Both the position numbers and the translations under genes were made by a program. Shown here one piece after another: positions 3,596 through 31,969 of a stretch of DNA of 32,000 bases (positions are counted from its first letter, which is position 1; each line of letters begins with the position of its first letter). This stretch comes from Paramicrosporidium saccamoebae KSL3. Its lineage: Eukaryota > Fungi > Cryptomycota. The notes beneath the pieces are model-generated. The model saw only the letters and a list, made by a program, of their open reading frames with translations, searched no databases and was not told where the DNA came from. The stretch spans positions 129,810 through 161,809 of the forward strand of contig MTSL01000205.1 of NCBI GenBank assembly GCA_002794465.1. The letters are read 5' to 3'.

Positions 3596-5764
3596 CTACA
3601 GATTATACTGTCGTATTGCATTCAATAAATTTTGGGTTCCTCGAAGCTGTTGATCCAAATAAGAGACTGTAGTCTCAATTTGGCATCGGAGTAGATCCTT
3701 CTCGGCTCTAAGTTGCCTCTGCTGGTGTAACGCCGACTCAAAGCGCGCCGCTAGGCTCAGTTGATGCTCGGTCAACCTAGCACGTGCCTGAGACTCTAAA
3801 AGTCTAGCGGGATTGGTCACCCATAGATCGGAGCTTATGACATGACTATAGTGATTAACAAGACGACTTCGAACTATAGACTCCAGGTCCCCAAGAAGAA
3901 CCAGAAGGGCAGCTCCTCCGGTAGCGACAACAAGAGAAATGGTTACAATCTTGCCAGCACTTCGTGACAGGTCAAAGACGCGAAGAGCAAGTGAAAATAA
4001 GTGCTGATATCCAAATGTAGCTCCAGCTATGGTGGCCGCGCTGAGCCAAGTTGATCCACGCAAAAGAAGTGAAACATCAAGTAGATCCAAGACGGCAATC
4101 TCGGGGATTGGGTCAATAAGGGACTCGTAGCTTGGAAATGCCAATTCGCACGATACGTCCTCATTAGAAACCAAATTAAAGACCTGTCTGGCATGTGCGG
4201 TTGCAACGCCATTCAAAAGATGGACTCCTTCGTAAGTGTTGGCAATTGCAAGCTGGCGAGCATCTCTCATCCATAACATTGCTTCCTGATGCAGTTTGGT
4301 GCGTACTAAATCGTTAAATTTCCAAATGTAGATGATCCCATTCCACTTTGACTCATAGACGATAGAATGTATCTTTTCAAACTTTGTCAAGTGTGTCTTG
4401 ATGTGATCATACAAACTTTGGCAAATCTCATCTAGAGTACGTCGGAGGTCTGCCTGAATTATGCCGTGATGGGCCATTAATTCTTCAAAGCAAGGGGCGA
4501 TTATATCCAATTCATGCTGGAGCCTGTTCAAGTCTTCAAAGCGGCGCTTGCGGTTATTGTCTAGGACAATGAACATTTCATTCAACAAAAGCTGGAGATA
4601 TGTTTGGGCAGGGAGAAGTTTAGATTTGGTCCGCTTCTCCAATATAAAGTTTCTCAGACACCTTTCCACCGATTTAAAGTCTTCGTGGATTCTAAACGAA
4701 TCCCCAATGTCTCTAGTCTCCACTGAAGAAGCTGACATTGGCGAGGCAGGATCGAAATTGCTGCTGCTTACTTGCTTAAAATACTGCCCGGCACTGATGA
4801 AATGTATCAACTCGGATCGTTCTTCATATGTCTTGGGCAGCACTTCCTGGATTTGGGCCAATACAATTCGCTTACATTTATCCTGGTTCTTGATATCGTC
4901 AAATTTGTTCACAACAACAAATATATAGGCTTTCTCATGGCTGGCAGTCTCCAAAAACTCGCGTGCACTCAAAGTCAAATGATTTGCGGCATTAATGAGG
5001 AACACTATGACATCAATGTCTTCTTGCTTTGAAAAAAGGGCCATAGTCTTAAAAAGGTCACTATTGAGACCAGGAGAATCAATCAGACTAACTTCAATCT
5101 GAGAACACTGAGCAAAGGCATTCACGTCGTCCTCTAAAAGGACTCGGAATAACTGGTAGCTCGATTCTTCGTCTTGAATGCACTCTTGCATCTTCGAAAT
5201 GGTCATCTTATCATACGTTTGAGGATTCTCCGAGTTGTAGATACTATAGTCTGCCATTGCATGGACACAAAACTCATCACGGGAAAAGGCATTCCGGACG
5301 GGGACTACCTCACAGAAACATTGAGTGCAAGGCTGCTGATCTGTGGGAAGTAAATCTTTTTGGAGCAAGGCATTAACAAACGTGGATTTTCCAGAATTCA
5401 CATCGCCAGTGACCAGCACTTTGCTACATTTGTCTCCAACTCGGCCATGGAGTCTCTCCAGGTATGAGATACATTCGCCTAGTCGATTTCCCATCATTCT
5501 TGCCAAAGTAACCTCATCCATTTCGCCCTCACGAATGGACAACTCGTCAGGTAGGGCTAGAAGCTTCAAATCTCCAGTCTTTATTGTTCTCATTGCAGAC
5601 TGGCCACGGCCGTGTTTTCCGTCACTCGAAATGGCCCCACCACGAGGATACAGCAAAGAAAACTTTTCTGATATGTGAGCATTGTAAATCGACTCTAAAA
5701 GCGTTCTGCTTTGCTGAATGTAAGATAAAATGCGAGCCTGCTTGTCAGAAAAGTTCTCAGACAT
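3596..5764 (-). CDS. FZO1: Mitofusin / Fzo1 dynamin-related transmembrane GTPase
   Basis: G1 GDVNSGKSTFVNALL, LLPTDQQPCT, G3 LIDSPGLN, G4 VVNKFD, hydrophobic C-terminal hairpin and terminal coiled coil. Confidence 0.9.
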   Translation of the reverse strand: MSENFSDKQARILSYIQQSRTLLESIYNAHISEKFSLLYPRGGAISSDGKHGRGQSAMRTIKTGDLKLLALPDELSIREGEMDEVTLARMMGNRLGECISYLERLHGRVGDKCSKVLVTGDVNSGKSTFVNALLQKDLLPTDQQPCTQCFCEVVPVRNAFSRDEFCVHAMADYSIYNSENPQTYDKMTISKMQECIQDEESSYQLFRVLLEDDVNAFAQCSQIEVSLIDSPGLNSDLFKTMALFSKQEDIDVIVFLINAANHLTLSAREFLETASHEKAYIFVVVNKFDDIKNQDKCKRIVLAQIQEVLPKTYEERSELIHFISAGQYFKQVSSSNFDPASPMSASSVETRDIGDSFRIHEDFKSVERCLRNFILEKRTKSKLLPAQTYLQLLLNEMFIVLDNNRKRRFEDLNRLQHELDIIAPCFEELMAHHGIIQADLRRTLDEICQSLYDHIKTHLTKFEKIHSIVYESKWNGIIYIWKFNDLVRTKLHQEAMLWMRDARQLAIANTYEGVHLLNGVATAHARQVFNLVSNEDVSCELAFPSYESLIDPIPEIAVLDLLDVSLLLRGSTWLSAATIAGATFGYQHLFSLALRVFDLSRSAGKIVTISLVVATGGAALLVLLGDLESIVRSRLVNHYSHVISSDLWVTNPARLLESQARARLTEHQLSLAARFESALHQQRQLRAEKDLLRCQIETTVSYLDQQLRGTQNLLNAIRQYNL

Positions 5765-7635: not shown

Positions 7636-9339
7636 TCAAGCGGAAATAATTGTGCACCAATTCTCTTGGGGAATCCATTTTAATGCCCCCTGGCTCAATA
7701 TCTCTCGAATGGCCTGGATCACACTGTAAGATTGGCGACCTGCATTAGCGCCTGTACGACCATTTCGTCCACGTTGCAGCTTGAAAGAGGATCGTGAATT
7801 CTCAGAAGCTACATCAGCACAAAAATCAGGTCCAAGTAGAACCGAGGGCTGCCCATAAATTCGGAGAGAATAGTCAATCACCAAAGCAATGACAAAGTTA
7901 TCAGAACTACGGTTCAGCCGGTATTGAGGCAGGTCGCCGAAGAACGATTTTTTAAGATCGATCAAAGTGTAGCAGTCTTTATACGCAGAGAGGACATTCT
8001 GCAGATCAGCAACAGAAACCGTCAAGCTCATGTTTTGATAGCGCGAGATGACTCTATCGTCCTTCTGTTTGTACATTGCAATAAATCTCGACACAATGTA
8101 GTTAGTCCGGGTAGGTTGGTAATTATTGGCATCCATATCCTGTTTCCTGGTGTCAAGAAACAACGACTGTGTGCGAGCACATCGAAGCTTATACAAATTC
8201 TCAATAGTAAAGTTTGGGAGCTTTGTTCTATCCGCCTTGAGGATCCGACAGAGAGCCATCTCATCAGATGCAAAAATTACCCTTGCGACTTTTCCAGTGA
8301 TTTCAGCATTTCCAATTCCTTCGAAGAGTACAAACAGATGCTCTGGATACAATACGGGAATCTGGCCTATCGAAGCAGGGCTTAGTGGATTGGCTTTAAA
8401 TTTACGAGTCCAAGCAATGACCATGTCGACAAATGTTCTGGCCATGCGTTGCCATGGAGGGTCCTCATTCCAAAGTGCTTGAACTGAGTTGCTGAACACA
8501 GTTTCATCGGCTCCACTGCCATGAATAATATGAGATACAAAGAACAGGAGCTTTGATTGTGCTTGTGACCTGTTTTTCTGAACCATTCGGCTCATAGTCG
8601 TGCCAACGTTAGCTAATTGGGATAGCTTGGTCTGGCAAATAATGCTGAGATAATGGATAAGACCATAGATTGATATGTCGCTGGTTTCAATACTTTTAGC
8701 CACGGCTTGCGAAAGCGGTGAACCATGACTCAAGTTCATTCTTACATCAAGCCCTGATGCAAAGTCAAAGTCTGCCGATGCTAGTGTGTCGGGAACAATG
8801 GCTGCTGGTATTTTTCTAAGCCAAGCTGTCACTTCGGGATGCGTCGGGTTGCAGCGTGCCAGTTTTGCAATATGCTCAGACTGATTGGTGGTGTTTAATC
8901 GCCGCTTGCGGGGATCCCTCTGATCAGTAGATGGTAGGGAAATTTGGGTATACCCAAATTCAATAAAGTAGCCTTCCACAGAAGCTCTTTCGGCAAGTTT
9001 TGCTACGCAGGATACACGACCAAAGAAATCATGTAGCAGCCAAGGAGTCTTTGATAGCATCGACATAATCTTCAAGATAGTGTCTCTATCAAACTTCTTA
9101 CACAAAGCCTTTCCGGGGAACAAATTTATCGGTAAAGCTGACAGAGTGTGAATGAATTTGGGAAATCCTGCGTTGTAGTCTGTAGATTTGCTAATGGTAG
9201 TCCAGAATTGTATCAAGGACTCTTCTTGCAAGCATTTTGCGATACGATGCACGTCTGTCTTTATAGTAATCGATAAAGAGTGGGCTATTAACAGAGATAG
9301 AAGCACTCGATATACTTTTGCATTCAGGAGACAAAGCAT
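7636..9339 (-). CDS. Hypothetical 567-aa protein, no family recognised, possible N-terminal signal peptide
   Basis: Uninterrupted 1.7-kb ORF filling the gap between genes; hydrophobic N-terminus RVLLSLLIAHSLSI. Confidence 0.75.
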   Translation of the reverse strand: MLCLLNAKVYRVLLSLLIAHSLSITIKTDVHRIAKCLQEESLIQFWTTISKSTDYNAGFPKFIHTLSALPINLFPGKALCKKFDRDTILKIMSMLSKTPWLLHDFFGRVSCVAKLAERASVEGYFIEFGYTQISLPSTDQRDPRKRRLNTTNQSEHIAKLARCNPTHPEVTAWLRKIPAAIVPDTLASADFDFASGLDVRMNLSHGSPLSQAVAKSIETSDISIYGLIHYLSIICQTKLSQLANVGTTMSRMVQKNRSQAQSKLLFFVSHIIHGSGADETVFSNSVQALWNEDPPWQRMARTFVDMVIAWTRKFKANPLSPASIGQIPVLYPEHLFVLFEGIGNAEITGKVARVIFASDEMALCRILKADRTKLPNFTIENLYKLRCARTQSLFLDTRKQDMDANNYQPTRTNYIVSRFIAMYKQKDDRVISRYQNMSLTVSVADLQNVLSAYKDCYTLIDLKKSFFGDLPQYRLNRSSDNFVIALVIDYSLRIYGQPSVLLGPDFCADVASENSRSSFKLQRGRNGRTGANAGRQSYSVIQAIREILSQGALKWIPQENWCTIISA

Positions 9340-9550
9340 GTCGTTGAATGGAAGGTGATTTGGCCGATTTGGTGCGGTTTAGTGCGATTTAAGGGCACAA
9401 TTTACTAAATCAGGAAATCAGATTACATCAGATCGGAAATATACGGGATTATAAGTAATGGCCTTTTATTGAGATTCCCGGACCGTGCGCATTTTCTCAT
9501 AATATACAACTTTATTTAATTCTGATGTGACTTTTGCAATGTTCGCAACT

Positions 9551-11879
9551 TTAGTCGAGCAAAGAAGGCTCATTAGTACCCTTCCGAGATGAGACGTCGT
9601 TTGAATTTCCCGGAGCTACGGATGAATACTCGACTTGACTCGCAGAGGGTTTGGAAGGGGTGATTTTTTCAGAATCGAATCTATCATTCGATCGTCGATT
9701 TTGGCGAAAGCTGAGCTTCTCAATTAGGTATAGTTGCCCTTCTTGGCAATCAGCCGAATATGCTTCCCTTTTAAACTTGTCTCGTTCATCTAGGCGCTCG
9801 TTCGTAAAAGTTGTGACCCGGTTGCAAACCTCTTGGGCTTCTTGACGCAAGTCGGCCATACCTTCTCCAATAATCCTAGAATTAGGGAATTCTAGACAAA
9901 ATTTACCTCAACTGCTGTCTTGTTTCTTCGTAAGAGGCTCTGATATGTGATAGATGTCTACATGCTTCCTTTTCTTCATACTCTGTCTCTGCCAACCCGC
10001 AGTCCTTGACCAAGTCTCCCCATTCCGAAACAAAATCGCTCAAAGTTTGCTTATGTAGCCCGGCGTTATCCTCAATATCTTGGCAGCAGTTATCAAATTT
10101 TGACATTTCCTGATGAAAGAAAGTAGACATGTCTTCCGGCTTGATTTTGTAGATTGAGTCACTTATGTCATCCGCCAAGATTGCTCTTTTCAGTTCCTCT
10201 AACGCAAGACCCCTTTTTTTACTAAGACCCTCCAAGTCTGAAAGTTTCTCGCAGAGCCGGTGTAGCACAGAATGCAATTCAGGGCGAGGTGCTCTGCTTT
10301 TCGTCTTGGGAACGTCGCTACTATCGGTTCTGGCTTGCAATGAAGAGTCTACTTCAAACAACTGATTCTTGAGTTTAGCATGCAAACTTTCAAGCTTCGA
10401 TAATGCTAGGAAGAAGGTCGAGTTTCCTACATGAGATGGAACCTGCTGCCATGCTTCTCCATGAGTCACACGCATCTTTTGGTACTCGCGAATCTCCGTG
10501 TCCAATAACTCGCCAGTCTTTTCTATCATCGACACTGCCATGCTCAGATCTGTATGTAGTCTATCAATCTCGTTTTTCATTACTTGCTTGGACTCTGCTC
10601 CTCTGGGACTCGCGATATCAGTGATGCTCTCACCCTTAATCAGCTTTGTTACTTTTTCGAGGACTGTGGGGAATCCGAGGGATGAAAGGGCGGTCTGCAG
10701 ATCATTGTCTGCATTGGTGACCTTTAAACTTTCGTATCTCAAGAGTTTTGATTTTTCTTCGCTGTATTTTGAAATTTCTTCGTGTATCCGAATGGGCATG
10801 AGTCGCTTGAAAAGGTCGGGCTTCTCGGGAACCCGCGTGAAGCATTCTGAAATTTCCACCAACTTGACTAGGGGAGCGCACTCTGGTTGCGCCAGGTTCT
10901 CAACAGAAGGGACGTTTTGATTGTAAATTAAATTGTTCTCCTTGTCTAGATCGATAGAGTATGATTCGGAAAGATCACGCAGTTTAAGGGCATACTGCCC
11001 CACATCCGTTTCACCCAGGGAGCCGTGGGTAACCAGCATTTGATTGACAATACGAAATCTGCATATTGCTTCTCCAATTCGAGAATCATTATATGCTGAA
11101 AGACCTAGGCAAAAATCTTTGATTGCTGTCCATGCTGCCTCTTTAAGAGAGAGCTGTGAAGCAGGATCGGTATCCTCATCCTTGGAATCACAAAAGTAGT
11201 CCCTAAATTCTCGCAACTCTCCGCTAGAAAAGTTTGTATATGCATCGTGAAAAAAATTAGAGGCTGCTGCCGCGAGACGGGCCAGAATTGCAGGTGACTT
11301 GCCATCCTGGATCGCCTTTAAAGTGGCCACTTCTTGCGCCTGGGCCAGCATCAACGAAGACAGAAAAATCAGGGAAGATCGGCCAATGTCCACTAGAGGA
11401 GGATGTAGAAAATTGTCAGCAATAAAAGAAAACACAGAGGCAGAAAGCTGTAGATGGCGGACAGTATCATTCAAAGACTCGATTTGACTGAAGAGAGCCC
11501 CGAGATTGAACAAGACATTTGCCTTTTCAAAGGCAACACTGCTCTGCTTAACACAGTTTCCACGATCAAATGCATCAAACCACAGAAAACTGATGGTTAG
11601 AGGATGTTCCGCTATATCAATCCTCTTCACGAGAGCCTCTAACTGTCGATAATAGCTTACAATAATGTCAAGTCCTCCGGAGGTTGACGGTGCTCCACGC
11701 AAGTCTTGGCGCATTTTATGGAACTGGTTGCTTTCGCCCTGGAATGTCGCAGGATCCTCGCCGAGTTGTGAAAGAGACAATTGAAGTTGATGTACCCAGT
11801 CCGCCTCATTGGTGATCTTACAGGGTACAGCAATTCGTTCGAAACTGGCCGGAATCGGAAGAGTGGGTGTCAGCACCAT
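9551..11879 (-). CDS. BRO1/ALIX-family ESCRT-associated protein (Bro1 or Rim20 type); intron 9876-9906
   Basis: Bro1 domain motifs (FLWFDAF, SVAFEKANVLFNLGAL, LMLAQAQE, KENNLIYNQNVP) and V domain (RIHEEISKYSEEK). A 31-nt GTAAAT..CTAAT..TAG intron fuses the 658-aa and 102-aa ORFs in frame. Confidence 0.87.
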
Positions 11880-11958: not shown

Positions 11959-12661
11959 ATGTCCAAGTTTTTGTCGCTACTGCCCTCGGCAGTGTCGGAT
12001 ACAGTGGAGAGTCTCAGGCGCATGAACTTGAGACAGGTGCTTTGAGGATTAGGGCTTATTACGTAGTTAATACTTCAGTGTCTTAATTTCGCGACTGTCG
12101 TTCTCACGGCCTACATGATTTGGAAAGGTCTGGGCGTGGTACTGAACAATGAGAGCCCTGTAGTTGTTGTGCTTAGGTATCTTGATTGCAGCTTGCAATT
12201 TATTTTTAGTGAGAGCATGTCTCCTGCTTTTGAGCGAGGCGATATCCTTTTTCTGACAATGTTCCGCAGCAGCCCAATAGTTGCAGGTGAGATTGTAGTA
12301 TTCAGTATCAAAGGCCGCGATATTCCTATTGTTCATCGTGTGCTAAAAATCCACGAAAGGTATCCTCGTTGAGATGCTGTAATGAGATAGCCGTGATGGT
12401 GAGATCAAGATTCTTACCAAAGGCGACAACAACGAGGTCCATGACCGAGGACTATACAATCGAGGTCAAAAATGGCTGACAGAAGAGGATATTGTGGGTC
12501 GTGTTCGTGGGTAAGACATCTATGGCTATGACTTTATATCACCTTTTAGGTATGCGCCGTATCTGGGAATGGTTACCATCATCATGAACGATTATCCCCA
12601 GGTCAAGATGGCAGTGTTGGGGATTATGGCCGTTCTCGTCTTAACTAACCGTGAGAACTAA
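11959..12661 (+). CDS. SEC11: Signal peptidase complex catalytic subunit; introns 12037-12066, 12177-12209, 12360-12390, 12511-12549
   Basis: Spliced product: RRMNLRQ|LILQCLNF...MIWKGL...ESPVVVVLS|[15 protein letters not shown]...DIPIVHRV...ILTKGDNN...DRGLY...IVGRVRG|[16 protein letters not shown]. Confidence 0.95.
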
Positions 12662-16504: not shown

Positions 16505-17906
16505 ATGACCTTGTCTTCTTCGACCAAGGCCACTATCTATGATGCTCTAATTCGCTTTGGGGTAAATTTTACATGTCTGCTGTTCGTCTTGCTCGTGCTC
16601 GCCTTAGCTTTCATCTTGCGATATCACATAATGCCTGCAATTCTTGCTGCATGCTGTTCGATTCCCCTCAGCGAGTTTTTTGAAGCCTATCAACGGTTGA
16701 TGTCGTATCCGATTCGAAGACGCTTATCCAGATTTTTGACCCTGCCTACTATCATAATTGTTGGAGCAGCTTATTTGTGGGTCGCATCGCTTCTTGGACA
16801 CCAAGGGAGCAGTATTATTACCTTTATCACCTTGATTACACTTTTGACCGTGGATATTAGAAACTCTTGGTGCTTTACTCTGGTCATCACGGGCGCAGTT
16901 CTACTGACATTGATCATACTTGTTCTGTCGGTTGTTGCCGAGGTATCGGCATTGTGGAAAACATTTTTTGCAAGAATCTTTAGTCCTGAAGGCAAAGAGC
17001 TGGCAGACCGGCTTCTCGACATCCTTGATCGAAAGGTTCGTCAGCTTACTGGAACCGATATTATTGATCAAATACAGCGAGCGGCTAAGATCATCGGAAT
17101 TGATATATCGACACCAGAACTGGTGATAGACGAAGAGCGAGTGGCGTACATTTTTTCTTTGCCAAAATTGCTACTTAAAACTGGATACACGAGTGATCTG
17201 CTTGCGTATGTGCAAAAACACATGACAACAGATCATGTGGTCCGAAGTTTTCAGGCTTTTTTGACCACCGCTTTTTATGCACTAAAGCTTGCCACGCGAA
17301 GCGCCGATTTTTTAATGCAATGTGCGACATTTGTCGCATCTACAACATACTTTGTTAATCAAAGAAAGTACATTGGAAGTAAAATCAGAGAATCCTCACG
17401 CTTGGCCCCGATGACAATGTTTCTTGAAGACACCAAGCGCTCCATGGTATCGCTTGCAACTACAATGGTCTCTAGGCTGCTGCTTGAAACATCCTGTAGT
17501 TACATAATTTTTCGCCTTTGCGGATCTAGATCTTGCACCAGTTTGGCTATTTTTTGCGGTATTTTATCAATATTCCCTGTGATCCCGCCATCAACGCTTG
17601 CGATCTTGCCTGGTATAGAACTGTTATCACGAGACAAATCTATTACTGCAGTTGTCCTACTTACCACACACTTTGTGATTAACCTTATATTTATTCCCAA
17701 AGCGTCCGTACCAACATTTTCAAAACGAGGTAATAACATTTCCTGTATCTTAGCTCATAGGACGTGCCGTGGATATTTGTGCACTTGTTGGATTTTGGAC
17801 CATTGGCTGGACAGGTCTGTTCTTTGGACCTATTATTGCCTCTATCCCAATCCTAGCTATTAAAAGCGCTTCGAGCTTTATTACTTTACTGCAATCGTCG
17901 AAATAA
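16505..17906 (+). CDS. TMEM245 / AI-2E-like multi-pass membrane protein; probable intron 17730-17760
   Basis: Many hydrophobic segments. Splicing gives a terminal G(F)W.IGW.GLFFGPII segment typical of the AI-2E/TMEM245 fold. An alternative 46-nt intron (17708-17753) is also frame-compatible. Confidence 0.65.
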
Positions 17907-18023
17907 ACTCTGATTACAGCATTAAAGGTGCACAAATATTGTACATATGTGCTGTCCAATGATTATTGATCGCCAGACCAGGGATTTGCGCTTGAGCAGT
18001 TGGGCAGGTCGGTAGGTGCACCG

Positions 18024-18230
18024 ATGCAGCTCGGTAACGTTCGTCAGGAAATTTTCATAGAAAGAAAAGAGCCACTCAAGGCTTCTGAAGTCACACGGAA
18101 GATTAAGAAATACCTAAAGAACCAGGAAGCTTCAACCTTGTCTCCTTCGGTTGCTGTCCACCTTTTGCAAATTCGCGAGAGCTCGTATTTCCTCACCCAC
18201 AACGCCGTAGCCCCTAATATACACATCTGA
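18024..18230 (+). CDS. Small 68-aa protein, faint resemblance to RNA polymerase I subunit A14
   Basis: ATG-initiated ORF occupying the gap between two genes; pattern PLKASEVTRKIKKYLKNQE...SPSVAVHLLQIRE. Confidence 0.4.
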   Translation: MQLGNVRQEIFIERKEPLKASEVTRKIKKYLKNQEASTLSPSVAVHLLQIRESSYFLTHNAVAPNIHI

Positions 18231-18320
18231 TTATCTGTTTGAGTTTTTTGTATACGAAATTAGTAAATTTTACCAACACTTTTGCCGGGGCTAGCTCATA
18301 GCGCTCGATCCAAAGGACTG

Positions 18321-19598
18321 ATGTCATCGAATCTCCTCTGGGTAGATAAGTACAGACCTTGCGACTTCAATGGCCTAGACTTCCATGGCGACGTAAATAG
18401 AGCTCTTGAGAATCTGGTTAATTCCCATACTGAAAAATTCATCATGTAGGCTACCTCAGGCGATGTGCCGCATATTTTAGTGACTGGGCCGAATGGATCT
18501 GGAAAGATGACCAGAATTAGAGCCTTTCTCGAACGACTCTTTAGCTCTGGCGTTTTTAAAGTATGAGGATACTGTCACCTAATTAATACTGTAGCTGAAA
18601 ATTGATGAACGAAGTTTCCAGACTCCATCGGGACGCAAATTTGACGTGACCGTCATATCCAGCAATTTTCACGTGGAAATTAATCCGAGCGATGTGGGGA
18701 TTTACGACCGTGTGGTTGTACAGGATATTGTTAAGGAGCTCGCACAGACACAGCAATTAGACAAATCCAAGCGAAATTTTAAAGGTATAGACGGTGCAAA
18801 CTCTGACGCTCTAGTGGTCGTCATACTTGACGCAGACAAGCTCAGTCGGGACGGCCAGCATGGCCTGCGGCGCACCATGGAGAAATATAGCTCAAATTTG
18901 CGAATAATTCTTTGCTGCACTACCTCAAGTCGAATAATTGATCCCATCAAAAGTCGTTGCTTTGTAGTTCGTATTCCTGCACCAACAGATATTCAAGTAA
19001 TCCTAAATGTGCAAATCTCATACTTGCAGGTTGAATCGAATTTACGGAAAATTTGCACTTTACAATCACTTCTTGTAGATGATTCTGTGCTACAAAAAAT
19101 TTCGCACTCATCAGCTGGGAATTATCGAAGGGCTGTTTTAAGTTTGGAAGAATTTTCTCAAAGGTTGCAGTGATTTTTTCAAGTGGTTCTAAGATGCTAG
19201 AAATCAGTTAGAGTCCATTGAATTCGAGTGGGAGCGGTGCATAAAAAATATTTCAAAGCAGATGTTTCTTGAACAAACACCGGCGAGTCTCCTGGTAATT
19301 CGTGGATATTTGTATGAGCTGTTATCGCACTCTATTCCGCCGACAACAATTATCAAGGAATGACCATATACATGTTTGTGTTGATCGTGTGTAGACTTTA
19401 ATGAAGGAGGTGACTAGCCACTCCAAATCGCAATCATTCCTGCAAAATGTACTCGCAGCATTTGCTTGCTACGTAGCGCATCAATACTTGTTGCTTATAT
19501 TGTCGTAGGAACATCGTTTGGTACGAGGTAGTAAGGCAATTCTTCATTTGGAAGCGCTCGCAGCAAACATTATGGCCACGATCGCGGCGATTAAATGA
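18321..19598 (+). CDS. RFC5: Replication factor C small subunit (yeast Rfc5 / human RFC3); introns 18417-18449, 18561-18594, 18785-18814, 18997-19029, 19164-19200, 19358-19394 (non-canonical), 19473-19508
   Basis: LWVDKYRP, PHILVTGPNGSGKMTRI, SNFHVEINPSDVG..DRVVVQ, QHGLRRTMEKYS, IIDPIKSRC, RGYLYELLSHSIPP, EHRLVRGSKAILHLEA. Confidence 0.94.
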
Positions 19599-19610: not shown

Positions 19611-20532
19611 TTATTTACTAAAATTATTCTTCATATCCCTCAAAGCTTGCATGACTAAAATTGGTCGCTCCTGCATTGTCGCTTTTTTTATGGCGGCAGA
19701 GTCCAGCCTCATGAAAGGATTAGTGTCCCATTCGTCCTGAATTGTGCTCGGCACTGATACAACTGATCCTTCAGCGCGCTCGAGGCCACGAAGTTTCTCA
19801 AGCTTGTTGATGACAGCACAATTTCCAGGATCAACGCTAGCAGCAAACTATGGAATTGATACACCCAAGGTGACGCTTTACCTCGAGATTACTAATGGTG
19901 TACTCATGGCCTGGAAATACACTTGTTGAGAGTGGGAGTTTACCAAGTTTTTCTAGCAGAGATTCGACCATTTGTTCGGCAGTGCCTTCGAAAAACCTTC
20001 CGCAGCCGGCGATAAACAAAGTATCTCCAGTGAATACGGCACGGGCAGATGGTTCCGCGCCATCATCATGTATGATGTAGGATAAGCTGCCCGAAGTATG
20101 GCATGGATTATGGATCGCTTGAACTCGGAGATTTCCAACAGAAAATTCGTCTTTATGTGCTAATTTGTGCGTCACACCAGGAATGCGATCGTCAAAGCCA
20201 TAAATCTTAATGTGCGGAAACATTTTTTGAAGTTCGAGGTTCCCGCCTGCATGGTCACTACCAGAAAGTCCAATTGCCTCGCATGCCTACCTGTGATGGT
20301 GTGTTGTTGAAACACAGGAGAGCTTATGAGTCGAGTCATTAATAAAAGGAAGAAGTTTGCGGGGTTCCACGGGGTCAATCGCCATCACTAAAGATATGGG
20401 CAGGTAGGTGAATATACTTGTTCCAGTGGTTTCATCAGTCACCAAATATGAGTAGTTGTCACTGAGCACAGAGATTGCTTGGACCGTAAATGGGGTCCTT
20501 CCACTGTATTTAACTAACTTGGCGACTGACAT
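19611..20532 (-). CDS. GLO2: Hydroxyacylglutathione hydrolase (glyoxalase II); introns 20388-20417, 20258-20290, 19848-19881
   Basis: DNYSYL, AIDPVEP, spliced THHHS|DHAGGN metallo-beta-lactamase motif, PCHTSG, FTGDTLFIAGCGRFFEG, GHEYT, PSTIQDEWDTNPFMR. Confidence 0.95.
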
Positions 20533-20577
20533 TTTCAGAAAGCCCCTGTAGGACGGATTATTAAATAGATGCGTGGA

Positions 20578-21130
20578 TTAATTCCTATCGTGGCTAGTGT
20601 TTTCAGGATGTTTCAGGCTGGGCGAATACGACCTAAAAGTAGCGCAATTTACCATCGATGGTGTCAAATCATGCAGGCGAGGGATGTCTGTGTCTGATTC
20701 ATTACGATCCGTAACGAGTATGGGGCGACAATAAGAGTCGGTGTGAATCATGGGCGAGGAAAACGATGGTGTCATGAATGCCATAACCAAGATATGACCG
20801 ATATACACAAACACGAGCGTCATGAATAAGTACACTGGCATGGTCACTGCCCAATGCCTAGTGGATTAATAATGGAAGCAGGCATTACCGTTGGGGATAG
20901 TACAAGATTCCGATATCGCGTAGTCCATCTTCTGGGAACATTCCCCAAATAAGAAACAGCAGGAGTAGCAAACATGAAGCGATGTGGAGAATAAATCCAT
21001 AAAAAGCTGTCCTTGTATTCTGGCGAGAGATTCTGGTTGGTAAATCGACTACCTCAGAGTCACTGCGGGCAATAAACCCACGACCAAGGGCATGCGAGGA
21101 TACGCTACGATCCAATACTTCGACGGACAT
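20578..21130 (-). CDS. GPI19: GPI-GlcNAc transferase subunit PIG-P/Gpi19; intron 20858-20888
   Basis: FYGFIL...LFLIWG.FP...L..IGI.YYPQR|HWAVTMP...MTP...IP.LHDL...VN matches the PIG-P domain layout. Confidence 0.85.
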
Positions 21131-21284
21131 GAATGGACCTGTGAGACCTGAGCTTGTAGCAAGGTCCCTTTACTGGGATCCCTAGTCCGTAAATATACTT
21201 ACTCACACACGCTGGTCACTTAGGCTGTAAATTTTCATTTCAAGAGTTTATCAATAGTCTACTTTTGAACAACTAACGGGTTAT

Positions 21285-21854
21285 TTAGTAGTCCTCCTCC
21301 TCTCGGCGGAAGCGTCTAAATTCACCAGCATTGCTGCCACCTTGGAAGCGGTCGGCTGGGGATCGGAAGCCCGCATTACTGCTTCTCTGAGCATTATATT
21401 CACCAGGCTGACGGCCACTAGGTCTGCTGCTATCTCTCTCAAGAGCAAAATCAGCAAAAACCTAAAGATGAATTCTCAATACAAGTGCGAGATTAAAACC
21501 TGGCGGCCTTCAATCTCAAGATTGCCCTCCTGAGTAACTTTTTGCGCATCTGATGCATTTTGAAACGTTACAAACCCAAATCCACGACTTCTCCCAGTCA
21601 TCTTATCCTGCTATATTACAAATCGAAATTTTCTGATACAGTTGCGAGGTGGGCATCGGCTACGGGCCCAAATGATTGAAAAAACTTTTGAAAGTTTTCT
21701 AGTAAGAATGTTAACAAACGTTCAGAGGAGGACAACAGTGACAAGAGTACAAATGAGGCTTCAAAGCGACATTGTAATAATGGTATTTTGGAAGAGTCAT
21801 ACCTTGTGAGAGCTTGAACGGAAGGCTGCGGATGAAAAGACGAGTGGAAGACAT
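21285..21854 (-). CDS. Single-RRM RNA-binding protein with low-complexity R/G/S C-terminus; introns 21699-21802 (104 nt), 21608-21639, 21462-21499
   Basis: Spliced: MSSTRLFIRSLPF (RNP2)...FFQSFGPVADAHLAT|DKMTGRSRGFGFVTF (RNP1)...LEIEGRQ|VFADFALERD...RRFRREEEDY*. An upstream in-frame ATG is at 21926. Confidence 0.85.
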
Positions 21855-22489
21855 TTGAGACTGAATACCTCCGCTGCCAGGGCTAGAGCGGTAGGAGTAC
21901 CATTGTGGTGGCCCAAAAAATGACATTGTTTAGTGAAGTTTTCGTAAGGATATGTTATAAATTCATCAGTGCACTTAATATAATACGCAAAAGGTGCAGG
22001 CCTAGAGGGCGTGCTTTACTGCAAATATACAATAAATCAGATCCATGATATGCGACATACGCCCCCTAATGGGTCGGCAACCTTGGTAAGGATTATAAAA
22101 GGCAATCCCGATACTGATGAGACCCACTAGGTTTCCGAATAGGGACAGTACTATGGATACTGCTGCAAATACTGTAGTAGTGCGAGGTTGCAGAACTATT
22201 GGGGGCAATGCTGACAAAGTCTGGCCAACCAGCAAGGACGGCTAATTGATCAGAGAAATAAATCCTCGCCGGCCCGTACCCGTACTAGTTTCGATACGTT
22301 TTACTCAACGTGCTACATCCTACGTCGGGCGGCTGGCCATCAGGCGCCTCGTACTCGTGGTAATGTTCTTACTACGCGACACTCTGGGTGCTCCTTAAAT
22401 TGGGCTATAGCAGACATTTATTTTTGTTCATTTGCAACCCTTTATTCTCTTTCAACAAATGCTAGCAGAAAGACGCCTAGAGCCGTCAC

Positions 22490-23617
22490 TTAGAAGCACT
22501 TGCGATGGACAATCGAAGGTCCAGATTCGTCGTACTCTTGCTTGGAAATCCACATTTGCTGGAAGGTAGATAGAGAAGCAAGGATAGAACCACCAATCCA
22601 TACAGAGTATTTGCGTTCCGGGGGAGCGACAACCTTGACTTTCATGGTAGATGGCGCAAGGGAAGTAATCTCTTTTTGCATGCGCTCGGGAAGACCAGAG
22701 TACATGGTAGTTCCACCAGAAAGAACAATGTTGCTGTATAGATCCTTTCGAATGTCTACGTCACAGATCTTGATGGAATTGTATGTGGTCTCATGGATAC
22801 CGGAAGCTTCAAGGCCGAGGAAAGAGGGCTGGAAGAGAGCCTCTGGAGCGCGGAAACGTTCACCTCCAATGGTAATAACTTGCCCGTCTGGAAGCTCGTA
22901 GGACTTTTCCACGGCAGACGATTTGAGGGAATCTTCATATTCCTGGTTGTAGTCTTGAGCAACATAGCAAAGCTTCTCTTTGATATCGCGCACAATTTCG
23001 CGTTCAGCAGAGGTGGTGAATGAGTACCCCCTCTCAGTAAGAATCTTCATCAAATAGTCAGTAAGATCTCGGCCAGCCAGATCAAGACGAAGGATGGCGT
23101 GCGGCACAGCATATCCTTCGTAGATTGGCACAGTGTGTGTGACACCATCGCCAGAGTCCATGACAATACCAGTTGTACGGCCCGAGGCATAGAGAGACAG
23201 AACTGCTTGAATCGCGACGTAGAACGCAGGAACGTTGAACGTCTCAAACATAATCTGAGTCATTTTCTCACGGTTGCGCTTAGGATTGAGCGGAGCTTCA
23301 GTGGAGAGAACAGGGTGTTCTTCGGGAGCTACTCGGAGTTCATTGTAGAAAGTGTGATGCCAAATCTTCTCCATGTCGTCCCAGTTGGTGACAATGCCGT
23401 GCTCAATAGGATACTTGAGACTGAGGATACCACGCTTTGACTGCGCTTCGTCGCCGACGTACGAGTCCTTTTGACCCATTCCGACCATGACACCTTGGTG
23501 GCGAGGTCTTCCGACAATCGACGGGAATACAGCCCGAGGAGCGTCGTCCCCAGCAAATCCGGCCTTGCACATGCCGGAGCCGTTGTCAATGACCAAAGCC
23601 ATAACGTCGTCTTCCAT
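22490..23617 (-). CDS. ACT1: Actin, intronless, moderately divergent
   Basis: [42 protein letters not shown]...[17 protein letters not shown], 375 aa from ATG 23617. Confidence 0.98.
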
Positions 23618-23930
23618 ATTGCTATAATTCAAGTTCTTTTGGAGGGTGGATGGAGAAAGGTTGTCCTGTAGACTCTCTACACCAGTGGCGATAAAGTGGC
23701 TGGGGTCCCCGAGCTATTTATTTGGACCGCGTTGCCAGCATGAATAAACCGAAAAAGGAAACCAATTCACAATAAAAGCAGCGTATTCTATTGGTGGAAA
23801 GGCAGTGGCTGACGGTTTAGAGCCAGCTCCCGTTTAGAAGTGATATTAAAGTTTATCTACATATTGCTGTATATAGCAACATATTAATGTGTATGTATGC
23901 ATAGTATGGGACAGAAGTAACTGCCGGGTT

Positions 23931-24369
23931 CTATGTCATAAAGCTAAGGCCACATCCGCATGTCTCCCGTACATTTGGATTCTTAAAGGTAAACCGGGCA
24001 GTCAATTCGTCTTCAGCAAAGTCCATTTCGGACCCTAGAACAGTCAGGAGAGCCTTTGCGTCAACCAGGACGCGCACATCTTAAATGTTAGCTTCCCACT
24101 AGAGTAGTACCATCCTGAACAACCTCTTCGTCAAATTGCCCCTTCTGCGTCACATAATCGAGGCTATACACGAGCCCAGAACATCCCCGCGATTTTACTC
24201 CGACCTTGACCATTCGAGGCTCTGGACCCTCATTTAACTGCCTCAGTCGTTTTATCGCCGCAGGCGTCTAGTAATTATAGCCGAACCTCTTGCCGGATAC
24301 CAGCTGTAATATCCTCTTCGGGCTTCCTGGTTTTGACGAAAGAAGCCTAAGAAGGGGGCTTCCGTACAT
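23931..24369 (-). CDS. ISA1: Mitochondrial Fe-S assembly A-type carrier Isa1; introns 24268-24300 and 24080-24110
   Basis: Spliced: MYGSPLLRLLSSK...L|TPAAIKRL...VGVKSRGCSGLVYSLDY...FDEEVVQD|DVRVLVDAKALLTVLGSEMDF...F.FKNPNVRETCGCGLSF. All three conserved Cys are present; intron 2 has a GCTAAC branch point. Confidence 0.93.
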
Positions 24370-27286: not shown

Positions 27287-28660
27287 TTATTCATAGTGAC
27301 GCAAACCATAAACCAGGACATGTCCTTTGTCGTTGCCAATGGCCAACTTGTCTCCAAGCGGATTGATAGATAGAGCGCCGGCACGAAAGACGGGTGTCTT
27401 GTCTTTAGGCCAATTGGAGAATACCCGCCCAGTCCTCATATGCACTATTCGAACTGCATTTCTACGCTCATTGCTTGCAAAGATCATAAGCTCTGAGGAG
27501 GGATGGAAGCCAATGTAGGTGATCTTGGTTGTTAGATTCATCAAACTCTTGATCGGCTTGACGGTATTAGCATCAGACTCCAGAATTTGTGACAGTTCAT
27601 AAATACAAACGACCCCGAGATTAGACCCAACACTCAGATAATATCCGTCCGGAGACATTGCTAATGCTGTACAACAGGTTCCGGATTCTTCGCAGATCAC
27701 TTTAAGACAGCTACAATGTTGCGTCTCCCAGATGTAAATTTTGTTGTCGGCACCAACTGAAAATAGATTGTCTCCCTCTTTTGAGAACACAAAACTTGAC
27801 ACTGCAGCATTCATTTGGAGTGTTCCATGGAGTTGAAAGGTTTTTGTAGACAAAATGACTATAGATCCTCCTTTTCCTATCATTCCAACAAAGCGCCCGC
27901 ATGGAGAGAATTGAATATGGGTCCAAGCCTTTTCTTTTCGTCCCGGAATCATGGTATACTTATCCACTCTCTTCTCGACAATGTTCCATACAATAAATCC
28001 TGCCGATGCCCCAGTTATCATCACCATCCGGCCGTCAGCTGAGAATTTCGCATCCAAAATATCAAATCCTTCAACTTTTAGAGACAAAAGGCACTTATTA
28101 TCCACTCCATTCACCTCGAATACCTCGGCTTTTCGGCTTTTACTAGCCACCAAAACCCATGGCTTGCAGGGATGAAAGTCCAGGGCAGCGACGGCGCCGC
28201 TGGATGGTTGTGCAAAATTGACATTTCTATAACGCCGTAGCCCGATCAAGTCTGGCAGTAGACTTGATCTTTCATCAGACTTTCGGGTCTTTAGGATAGA
28301 AAAGGGGCTTTCAGAGTCGCTGTTTAATTCGTCCTCGTCATTTGAGCTAATGTCGGCCCACTGGGGTCGAGGATGGAGTTTTTCAAACTGGTCTCTGAGA
28401 CGCTGACTATACGCTTGCCCCGAGACACTCTTTTCAGATGCACAAGTCCTCAGTTTCTTGCTTCGATTCTGTGTAACTAGACAGACCTCTAACGGTTCGT
28501 CATCTTCGTCTACCCATGCTGCCGAAGGGCCGTCTCTGCTCCCCTCTAGAGACGTAGCATGTCCAGGCACTTTGTCACCAGTATCAATATAGAATATCTA
28601 AAGTGTAAGTGTATCAAGTGGAGATACCGTCGAGCCATCCTCAAGTGAACCTCCAGCCAT
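27287..28660 (-). CDS. UTP18: U3 snoRNA-associated protein 18 (WD40); intron 28598-28627
   Basis: IFYIDTG, AAWVDEDD, YSQRLRDQFEKLHPRPQWA, WD40 repeats, HPSSELMIFAS...NAVRIVH...VFSNWP, AIGNDKGHVLVY. Start is ATG 28660 or the in-frame ATG 28702. Confidence 0.9.
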
Positions 28661-28715: not shown

Positions 28716-29184
28716 ATGGTAAGTTTCGTTCTCTAATCCAAAAGTGCGCCGTTCATCCATCCTACGGCTTTTCTTTTCGCCTTTTTCGAACATGTATTAA
28801 TACGTTTTGTAGTCGACCAACGTAAAAGCCTTTGAGCTCCGCAGCAAGTCCAAAGTCGAGCTTACCAAACAGCTCGCAGACCTCAAGAATGAGCTTGCGG
28901 CTCTTCGAGTCCAGAAGGTATCATCTGGAAGTGCCAACAAGGTTGCTCAAATCCACCATGTCCGCAAGGCTATTGCCCGCGTTTTGACTGTCATCCGCCA
29001 TGCTGACCGTGAGGCCGTGAAGAATTCCCTTGCTGGAAAGAAGCATCTTCCCAAGGATATGCGCGTCAAGAAGACACGTGCTATCCGTCGCCAGCTGACA
29101 AAGTTTGAAGCATCTCGAGAGACTGTTCGCCAGCACAAGAAGGCTATTCTCAACAAGGTTCGCAAGTACGCCATCAAGGCCTAA
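28716..29184 (+). CDS. RPL35: 60S ribosomal protein L35 (uL29); intron 28719-28812 directly after the ATG
   Basis: M|STNVKAFELRSKSKVELTKQLADLKNELAALRVQKV...IHHVRKAIARVLTVI...PKDMRVKKTRAIRRQLT...KYAIKA; canonical GTAAGT donor. Confidence 0.95.
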
Positions 29185-29335: not shown

Positions 29336-31969
29336 ATGAGTGAATTCCGAAAGTATCGATTAGTATCCAAGCTTCTCGACCACTATGGAGTTGCAGCAGC
29401 ACCTCAAAAGTACATTTCCCTTTTGAGATCTAATTCGAATGACCATAATGTATGCTGTGTGAAAGTTGCATCATTGTAATGTAGGAAGTTGTCGACATCA
29501 AGTGTCTAATCGCCCAATCTGAGGATCCTTCCCGGTTTGATGACCTTTCAGCAAGACTGAATAGCGAGTGGTACAACAACTGCTTTAATTTTCACTCTAA
29601 AGTGCAACGGATTTGGGCCGGATTCTTGGTTTGGCCAAGCTTCTCGCTGGATATGTGGCCACTGAAATCCCCTTTCAGCCAATTTCATCAGAGGCTGGCA
29701 AACCCGAACGTATTATGCCCGAGCCTACTTATCGCAAAATTTCCCCTGTCATTGAGGATATTGTTCCCTCCATAGCACACAGAAACGGATCCATAACCAA
29801 CGATGACTCATTGTTGGAAGAGGTATTGCGAGGTGTGTTGGGTTGATCCGTTTAGCTTTCGAAAAAGCTCAGCACCACCCAAAATCGCTTGGGCGTATTT
29901 GATTCCAGATTCATCGAGGCAAGCGATAGGAAGCCGGCGGGTGTTTCCGGAGGACTAAAGGTATGTCTGTCTGGTCGACCAATCTCTTAGGTGAAAACTT
30001 TTAAAAATGACTATGAATGGACTGCGGCCAGTTTTCCCACGCCATTGCAAGAAGTTTTGCTCATTGAAGATTCGTTATTCTTGCTCCTTGGAATATCTGG
30101 GCGCTATGTTCTCTTTGATGATGCAGAGGAATTTGGCGTTTTCATCGATGAGACATTAACATCATCTCTTTTCGATTCAATCTTGCCCGTATTGAATATC
30201 GGATGTTACTACAAGTACCTGGAATTGTTCTCTCAGCAATGTGCTGCTTATGAAAACGGCAGTGTTTGCCAGGCCCTTTCCTCGAGCCTTCAAAGTCTTT
30301 TAGTTGTATCTCAATCCTCTCTGCAAGTTTATTCGTAGGAATACCGGCAAGCCGTTGTAGTCCTTGAAAAAAAGTTTGCAAGCGGAAATCTCGGCCTCCA
30401 ACAACTAATATTTCATTTGCAGCCATTTGACAGGAACTTAAAGGTTCTCTATGAGCTTGCCAGAACCATAAACGAGGGAAAGATTCGTGGCGGGGCAATT
30501 CTGGTCGAATTGGAGCGACTCATGACCGTGTATGCTGGTGATAAGGCTGTGCGTTCACTGTTGGAGCCCATTCTGATTACGTGTGGGACGCCAATACTGT
30601 CAATGCTGTCTAAATGGCTACGCTCGGGCACGGCCGACGATCCCTGTGGCGAATATTTTGTCCGTCAACGGACCATGTTTGATGTGGAGGGAAGAACTGA
30701 AAATCCAATTTTGGATGCATTTATAGTCGTTGACCGAAACCTTCCATCAATTTTCCAGCCATCAGTCCAAAAAATTGTTCGAATTGGGGCGTACCAAAGC
30801 ATCCTTCGTGCCTATTGCGGCGATTCAGACAGTTATTCAATCGAGGGATTGGATGCCCTGCTCTCAACTAGCATCTCCTACGAAATCCGTCGGGTCACTG
30901 CTTTGGTGGACAAGTGTCTTGGTATTTTAAATCGTCAAATGCTTCTCCAGCTCGTTGCTGAAGATCGTCTCAGGCATGCACTAAGGTACCAAGCGATTAT
31001 ATTTTTTATACATACAGTCTATGTCGGAGATATTATTTTGTCGAAAACGGAGATGCCATCCACACGTTCCTCGATACTTGTAGAAATGATTTGAACAAGC
31101 CTGGACCTGCCGTTATCCAAGCAAGAGTAAAGTCCAGCTGGGAAAATATCCAAAAGTCTAGCTACGCACACCGCGACGATTTTTCACGAGTTCAGTGTTA
31201 TCAGGCGGAGCTCGGTTTATGGGAACATTTGGGTCGCATCACCAACGACGGCACTAGAGAAGAATCCAGCTACCCCCACGATCCCCTTCAAGGGCTGGAT
31301 CTGTTCTCACTTCAAGTCAAGTTTGATTTCCCCGATACCCTCATCTTTGATGCCAACATTCTTGCAAAATATGAGCTCATCTTCCGCTTCTTGTTCCGTA
31401 TAGTTGACTTGACACGCGAAATTTCCCGCTCTCCAAAATTCTCCTCCAAGACCCATCGCTCAGTTGTGCGGCGCTTCCAACTAATACGACGCCAAATGCT
31501 GCACTTTTTACAAAACATCCACCAATATCTTTCCTATGAAGTGTTGGAGCCAAGCTGGCACTCTCTGGACGAATCGATCACACGAGCTACCGGTTTGGAT
31601 GAGATTCTTCAAGTTCATTCCAAATTCCTGGATTTGTGTTTGCGACAGGCCATGCTTACAAACTCCAAGTTAATGCGGATACTGAATCTCCTGTTTAATC
31701 AATGTGCGCGCCTAGCAGGCCTCAACGTGTTGGACTTGGAATCTCCCGAGAGCGCTGCTCGATTATCAAGTATTACTTCAGAGTTCAACAAGATGATTCG
31801 CATGTTTTTGGAAGCTTTGCAGTATTTTTCCTCGCGAGATTACGACTACCATCTCGGTAATCTGTTTAGCCGGATTGACTATAATTCATTTTACTATGCT
31901 ACTTCCTATGGAAGTGACGCACATGATCAAAATGCCCGAAGACACCACTTGCCAATAATGACTGAGTAA
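29336..31969 (+). CDS. SPC97: Gamma-tubulin complex component 2; introns 29450-29484, 29571-29602, 29823-29855, 29961-29990, 30306-30338, 30986-31017
   Basis: QEVLLIEDSLFLLLGISGRY, LQQLIFHLQP, YFVENGDAIHTFLD, YELIFRFLF, RRQMLHFLQNIHQYLSYEVLEPSW, HSKFLDLCL match GCP2 grip motifs. The N-terminal exons are less certain. Confidence 0.87.

Follow-up and report, generated by a model that had tools for sequence, protein, structure and literature searches.

Introduction

Introns that begin with GA and end with AG form a rare but well-established class within the U2 type, known from human FGFR1-3 and abundant in Oikopleura dioica and the copepod Eurytemora affinis. In Eurytemora and Oikopleura, RNA-supported GA-AG introns carry a conserved AG ahead of the GA and an A after it (PMC7072748), and in Eurytemora the GA and GG donors account for ∼12% of introns (PMC5714493). 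GA 5′ splice sites also work in human cells, where the ranking of donors is GC > TT > AT > GA > GG > CT (PMC6280755). Here we describe a candidate for this class, intron 6 of the gene RFC5 in Paramicrosporidium saccamoebae KSL3, at positions 19358–19394 (+) of a 32,000-nt stretch of DNA (termed the window). Its first dinucleotide in the assembly is GA; as a GA-AG intron it would add a new lineage and an essential gene to the class, and no new mechanism.

The source sequence set, MTSL00000000, is the genome of P. saccamoebae, a rozellomycotan parasite that lives inside amoeba nuclei (PMC5701793). The window is the terminal 32 kb of the 161,809-bp contig MTSL01000205.1 in assembly GCA_002794465.1; a position in the GenBank record is the window position plus 129,809, in the same orientation, so that window position 19359, the second base of intron 6, is record position 149168. 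All positions below are those of the window unless another sequence is named. No description of splice-site usage in Paramicrosporidium was found in the literature searched, and the genome paper is silent on introns (PMC5701793). A preliminary description of the window had proposed that RFC5 holds an obligatory non-canonical intron, with either GA-AG or AT-AC borders.

Reading frame and position of intron 6

Exon 6 of RFC5 ends with ATT ATC AAG at 19357, and the unspliced sequence continues GAA TGA, with the stop codon at 19361–19363, just as the preliminary description had said. The conserved RFC5 C-terminus sits downstream of this stop, in a different frame. With its flanks the intervening segment is aag|GAATGACCATATACATGTTTGTGTTGATCGTGTGTAG|act, that is, aag|GAATGA...TGTAG|act. 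We reproduced both of the frame-restoring cuts proposed earlier: removal of 19358–19394 (37 nt, GA...AG) gives K-T-L, and removal of 19360–19396 (AT...AC), shifted by 2 nt, gives K-D-L. The GA-AG cut leaves an AAG|ACT junction between residues 290 and 291, in a predicted mRNA reading ...ATTATCAAGACTTTAATG.... Once these 37 nt are removed the RFC_C domain (PF22534) is unbroken: residues 248–338 match positions 1–92 of the 93 in the profile, at 74 bits, with the junction mid-way in the match and without an indel. The gene is RFC5, and the segment must be excised for the conserved C-terminal domain, as had been claimed.

For scoring the alternative products a profile was built from 120 homologues. 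The K-T-L product scores 442.5 bits, K-D-L or K-A-L 441.3, the truncated protein 395.0 and the best canonical alternative 389.7. At the junction column Thr is the commonest residue (69 of the 120 homologues), while Asp and Ala are seldom found there.

The exon structures of the RFC5 orthologues of Basidiobolus meristosporus and Spizellomyces punctatus were mapped on their DNA. Six of the seven introns of the Paramicrosporidium gene match an intron of one or both orthologues in column and phase; the fifth is five columns off a Basidiobolus intron of the same phase, in a gapped region. Intron 6 lies at alignment column 307 in phase 0, a position shared by Basidiobolus (IIIK|TLAL) and Spizellomyces (IILK|YLAF). 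Because the RFC_C match runs end to end and the column and phase are shared with two fungi, we take 19358–19394 to be a real, ancestral spliceosomal intron, and we regard the intron with its AAG|ACT junction as secure, with high confidence. The analysis thus establishes how old the intron is, where precisely it is bounded in terms of the mRNA, and that its donor in the assembly is not GT.

The ancestral site lies in phase 0 between Lys and the next codon, and therefore points to the GA-AG register. Donor-flank scores from a matrix of local introns agree: 3.78 for GA-AG, −0.74 for GG-TA, −1.13 for AA-GA and −5.67 for AT-AC. The corresponding acceptor-flank scores are −1.20 for GA-AG and −5.45 for AT-AC. 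Cuts as GG-TA or AG-GT are formally equivalent to GA-AG, since they leave an identical mRNA. Three independent lines, the domain match, the orthologous gene structures and the residue and flank scores, agree on the intron, and the GA-AG register is favoured over AT-AC. Of the two border types offered in the preliminary description, it is thus GA-AG (phase 0, Thr, donor flanks 3.78) that stands, whereas AT-AC (donor flanks −5.67, a rare Asp, off the conserved position) fares poorly.

Gene model

RFC small subunit 5 is named RFC5 in yeast and RFC3 in animals. The gene extends on the + strand from the ATG at 18321 to the TGA at 19598, in eight exons that encode 345 amino acids in frame without an internal stop. 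Its product has 45–50% identity, over 97% of the query, to the RFC5/RFC3 proteins of early-diverging fungi and animals, and matches the Pfam families DNA_pol3_delta2, RFC1-5 lid and RFC_C, such that the AAA+ module, lid and collar domain are all present. These matches support the assignment of 18321–19598 as RFC5. The protein search turned up no further RFC5-like protein at more than 50% identity.

Exons 1–5 occupy 18321–18416, 18450–18560, 18595–18784, 18815–18996 and 19030–19163. Exon 6 (19201–19357) was delimited by alignment and ends with the conserved segment VIRGYLYELLSHSIPPTTIIK. Exon 7 (19395–19472) encodes TLMKEV...AAFACY, and exon 8 (19509–19598) encodes EHRLVRGSKAILHLEALAANIMATIAAIK, followed by the stop codon; the protein reads TLMKEV...ACY|EHRLVRGSKAILHLEA... 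across the junction of these last two exons. The seven introns are 30–37 nt long and all except intron 6 are GT-AG: intron 1 (18417–18449, GTTAAT..TAG, 33 nt), intron 2 (18561–18594, GTATGA..TAG, 34 nt), intron 3 (18785–18814, GTATAG..TAG, 30 nt), intron 4 (18997–19029, GTAATC..CAG, 33 nt), intron 5 (19164–19200, GTTGCA..TAG, 37 nt), intron 6 (19358–19394, GAATGA..TAG, 37 nt, phase 0) and intron 7 (19473–19508, GTAGCG..TAG, 36 nt). Intron 7 is also in phase 0, at a position common to the Basidiobolus and Spizellomyces orthologues.

GenBank presents this locus otherwise. Its annotation was made with Maker and Augustus, using a Rhizopus training set (PMC5701793). The call at 16631–19173 (+), of 635 amino acids, is a chimera of an upstream multi-pass membrane-protein gene (16505–17906) and part of RFC5. 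It ends at a TGA within RFC5 intron 5, which leaves exons 6–8 unannotated, and it presumably also reads across introns 3 (30 nt) and 4 (33 nt), which are free of stop codons. Since the lengths of these two introns are multiples of three and neither holds a stop codon, plain open reading frame finders pass through them; the frame 18646–19173 spans both. The same trap is found at the SEC11 intron 12177–12209 and at the intron 20417–20388 of the glyoxalase II gene HAGH. The 345-amino-acid model corrects the GenBank locus whichever way the base call at 19359 falls. With the chimeric and truncated model in the database, RFC5 would be mis-scored whenever replication genes are compared across Rozellomycota and Microsporidia.

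Intron 6 and the local intron grammar

For a local intron grammar, 31 GT-AG introns of the window were curated by homology reasoning and with a small parser. All are 29–39 nt long with the sole exception of an intron of 94 nt in the ribosomal protein gene RPL35. GTA occupies positions +1 to +3 in 28 of 30, conservation is weak past +4, the exon end favours AAG or GAG, and the acceptor is TAG in 26 of 30. A branch-like motif yTnAy occurs in 25 of the 31, its A mostly 6–13 nt from the 3′ end.

In everything except its second base, intron 6 conforms to this grammar. The 5′ splice site GAATGA (19358–19363) fits the local consensus (A)AG|GTA(T/A) apart from the A at 19359 in place of T. The preliminary description had likewise noted that the 5′ end is neither GT nor GC in the assembly and that it resembles a local GTATGA-type donor with T+2 changed to A. 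With +1 and +2 left out, the donor flanks score 3.78, fifth among 23 local donors; flanks as good as these are found at 0.18% of the GA sites of the window. At the other end, a branch-point-like TTGAT (19381–19385) places its A at 19384, 10 nt from the 3′ end, and the 3′ splice site is the usual local acceptor, TAG (19392–19394). TTGAT, with a following C, also occurs in the bona fide intron 29823–29855, 9 nt from its end, though the motif is short and its evidence for the branch point in intron 6 is accordingly weak. Judged as a U2-type intron, the segment lacks the GT or GC at its 5′ end, with GA in the assembly; it has the frame restoration, the AG end, the length and branch geometry and the conserved position.

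Comparison with known introns

The closest likeness is to the GA-AG U2-type introns of human FGFR1-3, O. dioica and E. affinis, with which intron 6 shares the GA start, the AG acceptor and the AG/A flanks: in aAG|GAA the AG is directly upstream and the A directly downstream of GA. Differences are several. The FGFR GA site reportedly needs a canonical site that lies 6 nt before it (PMC7072748), whereas the nearest upstream GT in RFC5, at 19321, is 37 nt away. Unlike the Oikopleura and Eurytemora class, the RFC5 case is single among ∼32 local introns and is known from DNA alone. P. saccamoebae, moreover, unlike the known hosts of GA-AG introns, is a rozellid relative of fungi with introns of 30–40 nt. 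It is the GT-AG introns of the window that intron 6 otherwise resembles, in its length (37 nt against 29–39), TAG, short distance from branch to end, +3 A, AAG exon end and ancestral position; the difference is A in place of T at +2.

Among the mapped orthologues, the Basidiobolus intron (1745–1803 of sequence L007) is at the same column and in phase 0, and it too is annotated with a non-GT donor, GCAAGT...CAG. It differs in being 59 nt long and of the GC-AG type, a common and well-tolerated non-canonical class, and its border is a curiosity, not evidence. The orthologous Spizellomyces intron (1791–1854 of sequence L008) reads GTAAAT...CAG.

Shifted by 2 nt, intron 6 shows the AT...AC ends of U12-type AT-AC introns and still restores the frame; unlike them it lacks their consensus sequences, has the wrong length and phase and scores poorly at its flanks. 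The non-conventional introns of euglenids likewise have non-GT borders. Unlike those, RFC5 intron 6 has no base-paired structure joining its ends (its fold is weaker than that of shuffled sequences, z = +1.65), and the taxon is unrelated.

Search for other non-GT introns

The parser combines an intron model based on position weight matrices with a score floor, and permits non-GT donors at a penalty. With such donors permitted, RFC5 was the only gene in which two halves were joined, via intron 6. Loose intron rules made the parser chain unrelated genes, and it was then useless for non-canonical introns. Three other candidates were rejected. A GG intron at 31049–31083 disagrees with a conserved GCP motif, SLCRRYYFVENGD, which requires a GT-AG intron at 30986–31017; a GG intron at 4338–4306 would be an in-frame cut within an intact 722-amino-acid open reading frame; and a GA intron at 4908–4935 of sequence L009, the 10 kb upstream, would wreck the transmembrane segment and KRHHF tail of a lectin. 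The window holds no snRNA or tRNA gene (no RNA gene was found with Rfam). For a comparison of donors in close relatives, metagenome contigs yielded only RFC-like loci at 21–30% identity.

Proposed splicing of intron 6 as GA-AG

The explanation that we put first is that intron 6 is an ancestral phase-0 U2-type intron whose first dinucleotide is GA in place of GT, and that the major spliceosome excises 19358–19394 as GA-AG, joining AAG (Lys290) to ACT (Thr291). The splice would bring the final 55 residues of the RFC_C collar domain back into frame, and recognition may be aided by the remaining signals, each of which matches the local optimum or comes close to it: AAG, +3 A, +4 T, a length of 37 nt, TTGAT and TAG. 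We infer that the organism truly carries A at 19359 (or carries nothing but A there) and that GA splicing is efficient enough to supply RFC5. That GA-AG splicing is both real and in use we hold to be about an even chance. The observation in the preliminary description is therefore partly confirmed and its interpretation partly supported; its word ‘obligatory’ is unproven.

Several points weigh against this explanation. GA is normally a poor donor, and replacing U by A at +2 is a classic ‘dead-end’ mutation; according to Aebi et al. (1987) and Brackenridge et al. (2003), both cited in PMC6280755 and PMC7072748, it reportedly permits the first step in most cases and blocks exon ligation. The rank of the donor flanks, fifth of 23, does no more than hint at compensation. 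A search with the last 107 residues found the C-terminal exons of RFC5 in no protein of a collection of 5.8 billion sequences. No other non-GT intron appeared among the ∼31 curated in the window or in the parsed 10 kb upstream; GA donors are therefore not common here, and nothing points to a spliceosome that accepts GA routinely, with ∼1 in about 32 curated introns as the upper picture for GA donors in this sample. Finally, the sequence is a Velvet consensus of Illumina reads trimmed to 80 nt, with most contigs at 50–59×, and its authors inferred diploidy from allele frequencies of ∼50:50 at 3,832 variable positions (PMC5701793), so that one T/A difference would explain everything.

This last point gives rise to the most serious alternative, in which RFC5 is functional, its sixth intron is an ordinary GT-AG intron, and the A at 19359 is a recessive heterozygous null allele, a minority variant of the culture or a rare consensus error. 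RFC5 would then be made from a GTATGA allele, the restored T giving the hexamer of RFC5 intron 2 (18561). The preliminary description, too, had allowed for a sequencing error at this base. Because the organism is diploid with heterozygous single-nucleotide polymorphisms, a heterozygous or mis-called 19359 stays a serious rival; in short-read assembly Velvet merges allelic bubbles into a single path, the remaining ∼31 curated introns are GT-AG, and the 10 kb upstream, parsed by dynamic programming, call for no non-GT donor. By inference the prior for this alternative is a few percent, from ∼5e-4 heterozygous sites per base (in a genome that we take to be ∼7.3 Mb), ∼36 introns in the window with four splice bases each, and assembly of the broken allele, which is the same order as the prior for a genuine GA-AG intron at the frequencies typical of fungi. 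The counterpoints are that a randomly mutated donor should have average flanks, whereas those of intron 6 are in the top quarter, as fits a constrained GA site; that a consensus error at any given base is unlikely at 50–59×; and that selection should act against a null allele where the gene is essential if, as the genome authors argue, the parasite is sexual (PMC5701793). None of them is strong, and we judge this alternative to be a substantial possibility, at slightly better than one chance in three.

Two further alternatives accept the GA as real or the intron as non-canonical and fare much worse. RFC5 is essential wherever it has been tested, so a gene that was recently damaged or is decaying, with the GA unused, would be a surprise; the transcript would either retain intron 6, for a truncated protein ending ...IIKE, or be spliced from a cryptic donor. 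The statement in the preliminary description that a frame-restoring GT or GC donor does not exist fails if taken literally, for an enumeration of frame-restoring deletions found several canonical pairs: GT 19295 with AG 19394, GT 19312 with AG 19417, GT 19321 with AG 19417 and several of the GC-AG type. Its practical conclusion survives, as all of these delete at least 21 conserved residues (VIRGYLYELLSHSIPPTTIIK...) at a cost of about 53 bits, and the upstream GTATGA (19312) does fail to restore the frame when paired with acceptor 19394. Of these donors ctg|GTAATT(C) (19295–19300, +) is a plausible cryptic site if the GA fails, not a normal splice. With acceptor 19394 it defines an in-frame intron of 100 nt, its donor score of 2.13 is mid-range, and an intron of 94 nt exists locally in RPL35; the GenBank annotation, too, is without the C-terminal exons, and cryptic sites are often activated when a donor is lost (PMC6280755). 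Its use, on the other hand, would halve the RFC_C match and lose 53 bits against the homologue profile. The 21 residues of VIRGYLYELLSHSIPPTTIIK, among the most strongly conserved of the C-terminal half, and the downstream motif YEHRL..GSKAI.HLEA are well conserved in homologues, the overall loss from cryptic splicing or retention is 47–53 bits with a broken RFC_C domain, exons 7 and 8 and intron 7 are intact, and the protein search saw no second copy of RFC5; we think an unused GA quite improbable. Less credible still, and in our view barely to be entertained, is an AT-AC intron at 19360–19396 (K-D-L), excised by the minor, U12-type spliceosome or as a U2-type AT-AC intron. It restores the frame, with a protein score just 1.2 bits from that of K-T-L, and the terminal bases A (+1) and C (−1) are a known compatible pair. 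We reject it as the likely reading because U12 motifs are absent, as noted in the preliminary description, and the residue and flank scores are poor: the register starts ATGACC and not with the 5′ motif ATATCC, no match to the branch consensus TCCTTRAY occurs on the + strand of 19358–19396, G at +3 is found in 0 of 30 local introns, and the junction leaves the conserved phase-0 position for a column where D is rare. At 37 nt it would, moreover, be a very short intron for the U12 type.

Were the GA real and in use, a parasite with a reduced genome would rely, for an essential replication gene, on a 5′ site that usually stalls splicing. Intron 6 would then be a natural test case for the recognition of very short introns, and a warning that gene finders restricted to GT lose real genes in such genomes. 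A bolder version supposes that A is homozygous and GA splicing efficient, with ultra-short introns recognized chiefly by length, +3 A and branch/TAG in place of GU; intron 6 would in that case be the outward sign that the 5′ splice-site rule has been relaxed along the lineage toward Microsporidia, in which the spliceosome is reduced. We consider this version unlikely, and a general relaxation of 5′ splice-site identity in the genome gets no support from the all-GT local sample.

Neighbouring genes

The intron grammar of the window is extremely compact, and Augustus trained on Rhizopus evidently coped poorly with it. The only long intron is that of RPL35 (ribosomal protein L35, uL29), 94 nt at 28719–28812 (+) directly after the ATG, which recalls the 5′-proximal introns that Microsporidia have kept in their ribosomal protein genes. 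Beside it, a gene for a 447-amino-acid WD40-repeat protein at 27287–28660 (−), with one 30-nt intron (28627–28598), has no call in the GenBank list for the stretch.

Other calls appear to merge neighbours. The single 447-amino-acid call at 19611–21926 (−), with PIG-P and HAGH_C domains, reads as two genes. One of these is HAGH at 20532–19611 (−), with GT-AG introns 20417–20388, 20290–20258 and 19881–19848 and an intact THHHSDHAGGN motif. The 1280-amino-acid BRO1-domain call at 7636–11879 (−) appears to join a BRO1/ALIX-like gene (11879–9551, −; one intron, 9906–9876) to a 567-amino-acid open reading frame (9339–7636). Actin is called at 22490–24026 (−) with 425 amino acids, whereas the intronless open reading frame from the ATG at 23617 gives the standard actin of 375. 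The extension probably takes exons of an adjacent IscA-like iron-sulfur assembly gene (about 24213–23931), whose intron 24110–24080 has an AAG acceptor.

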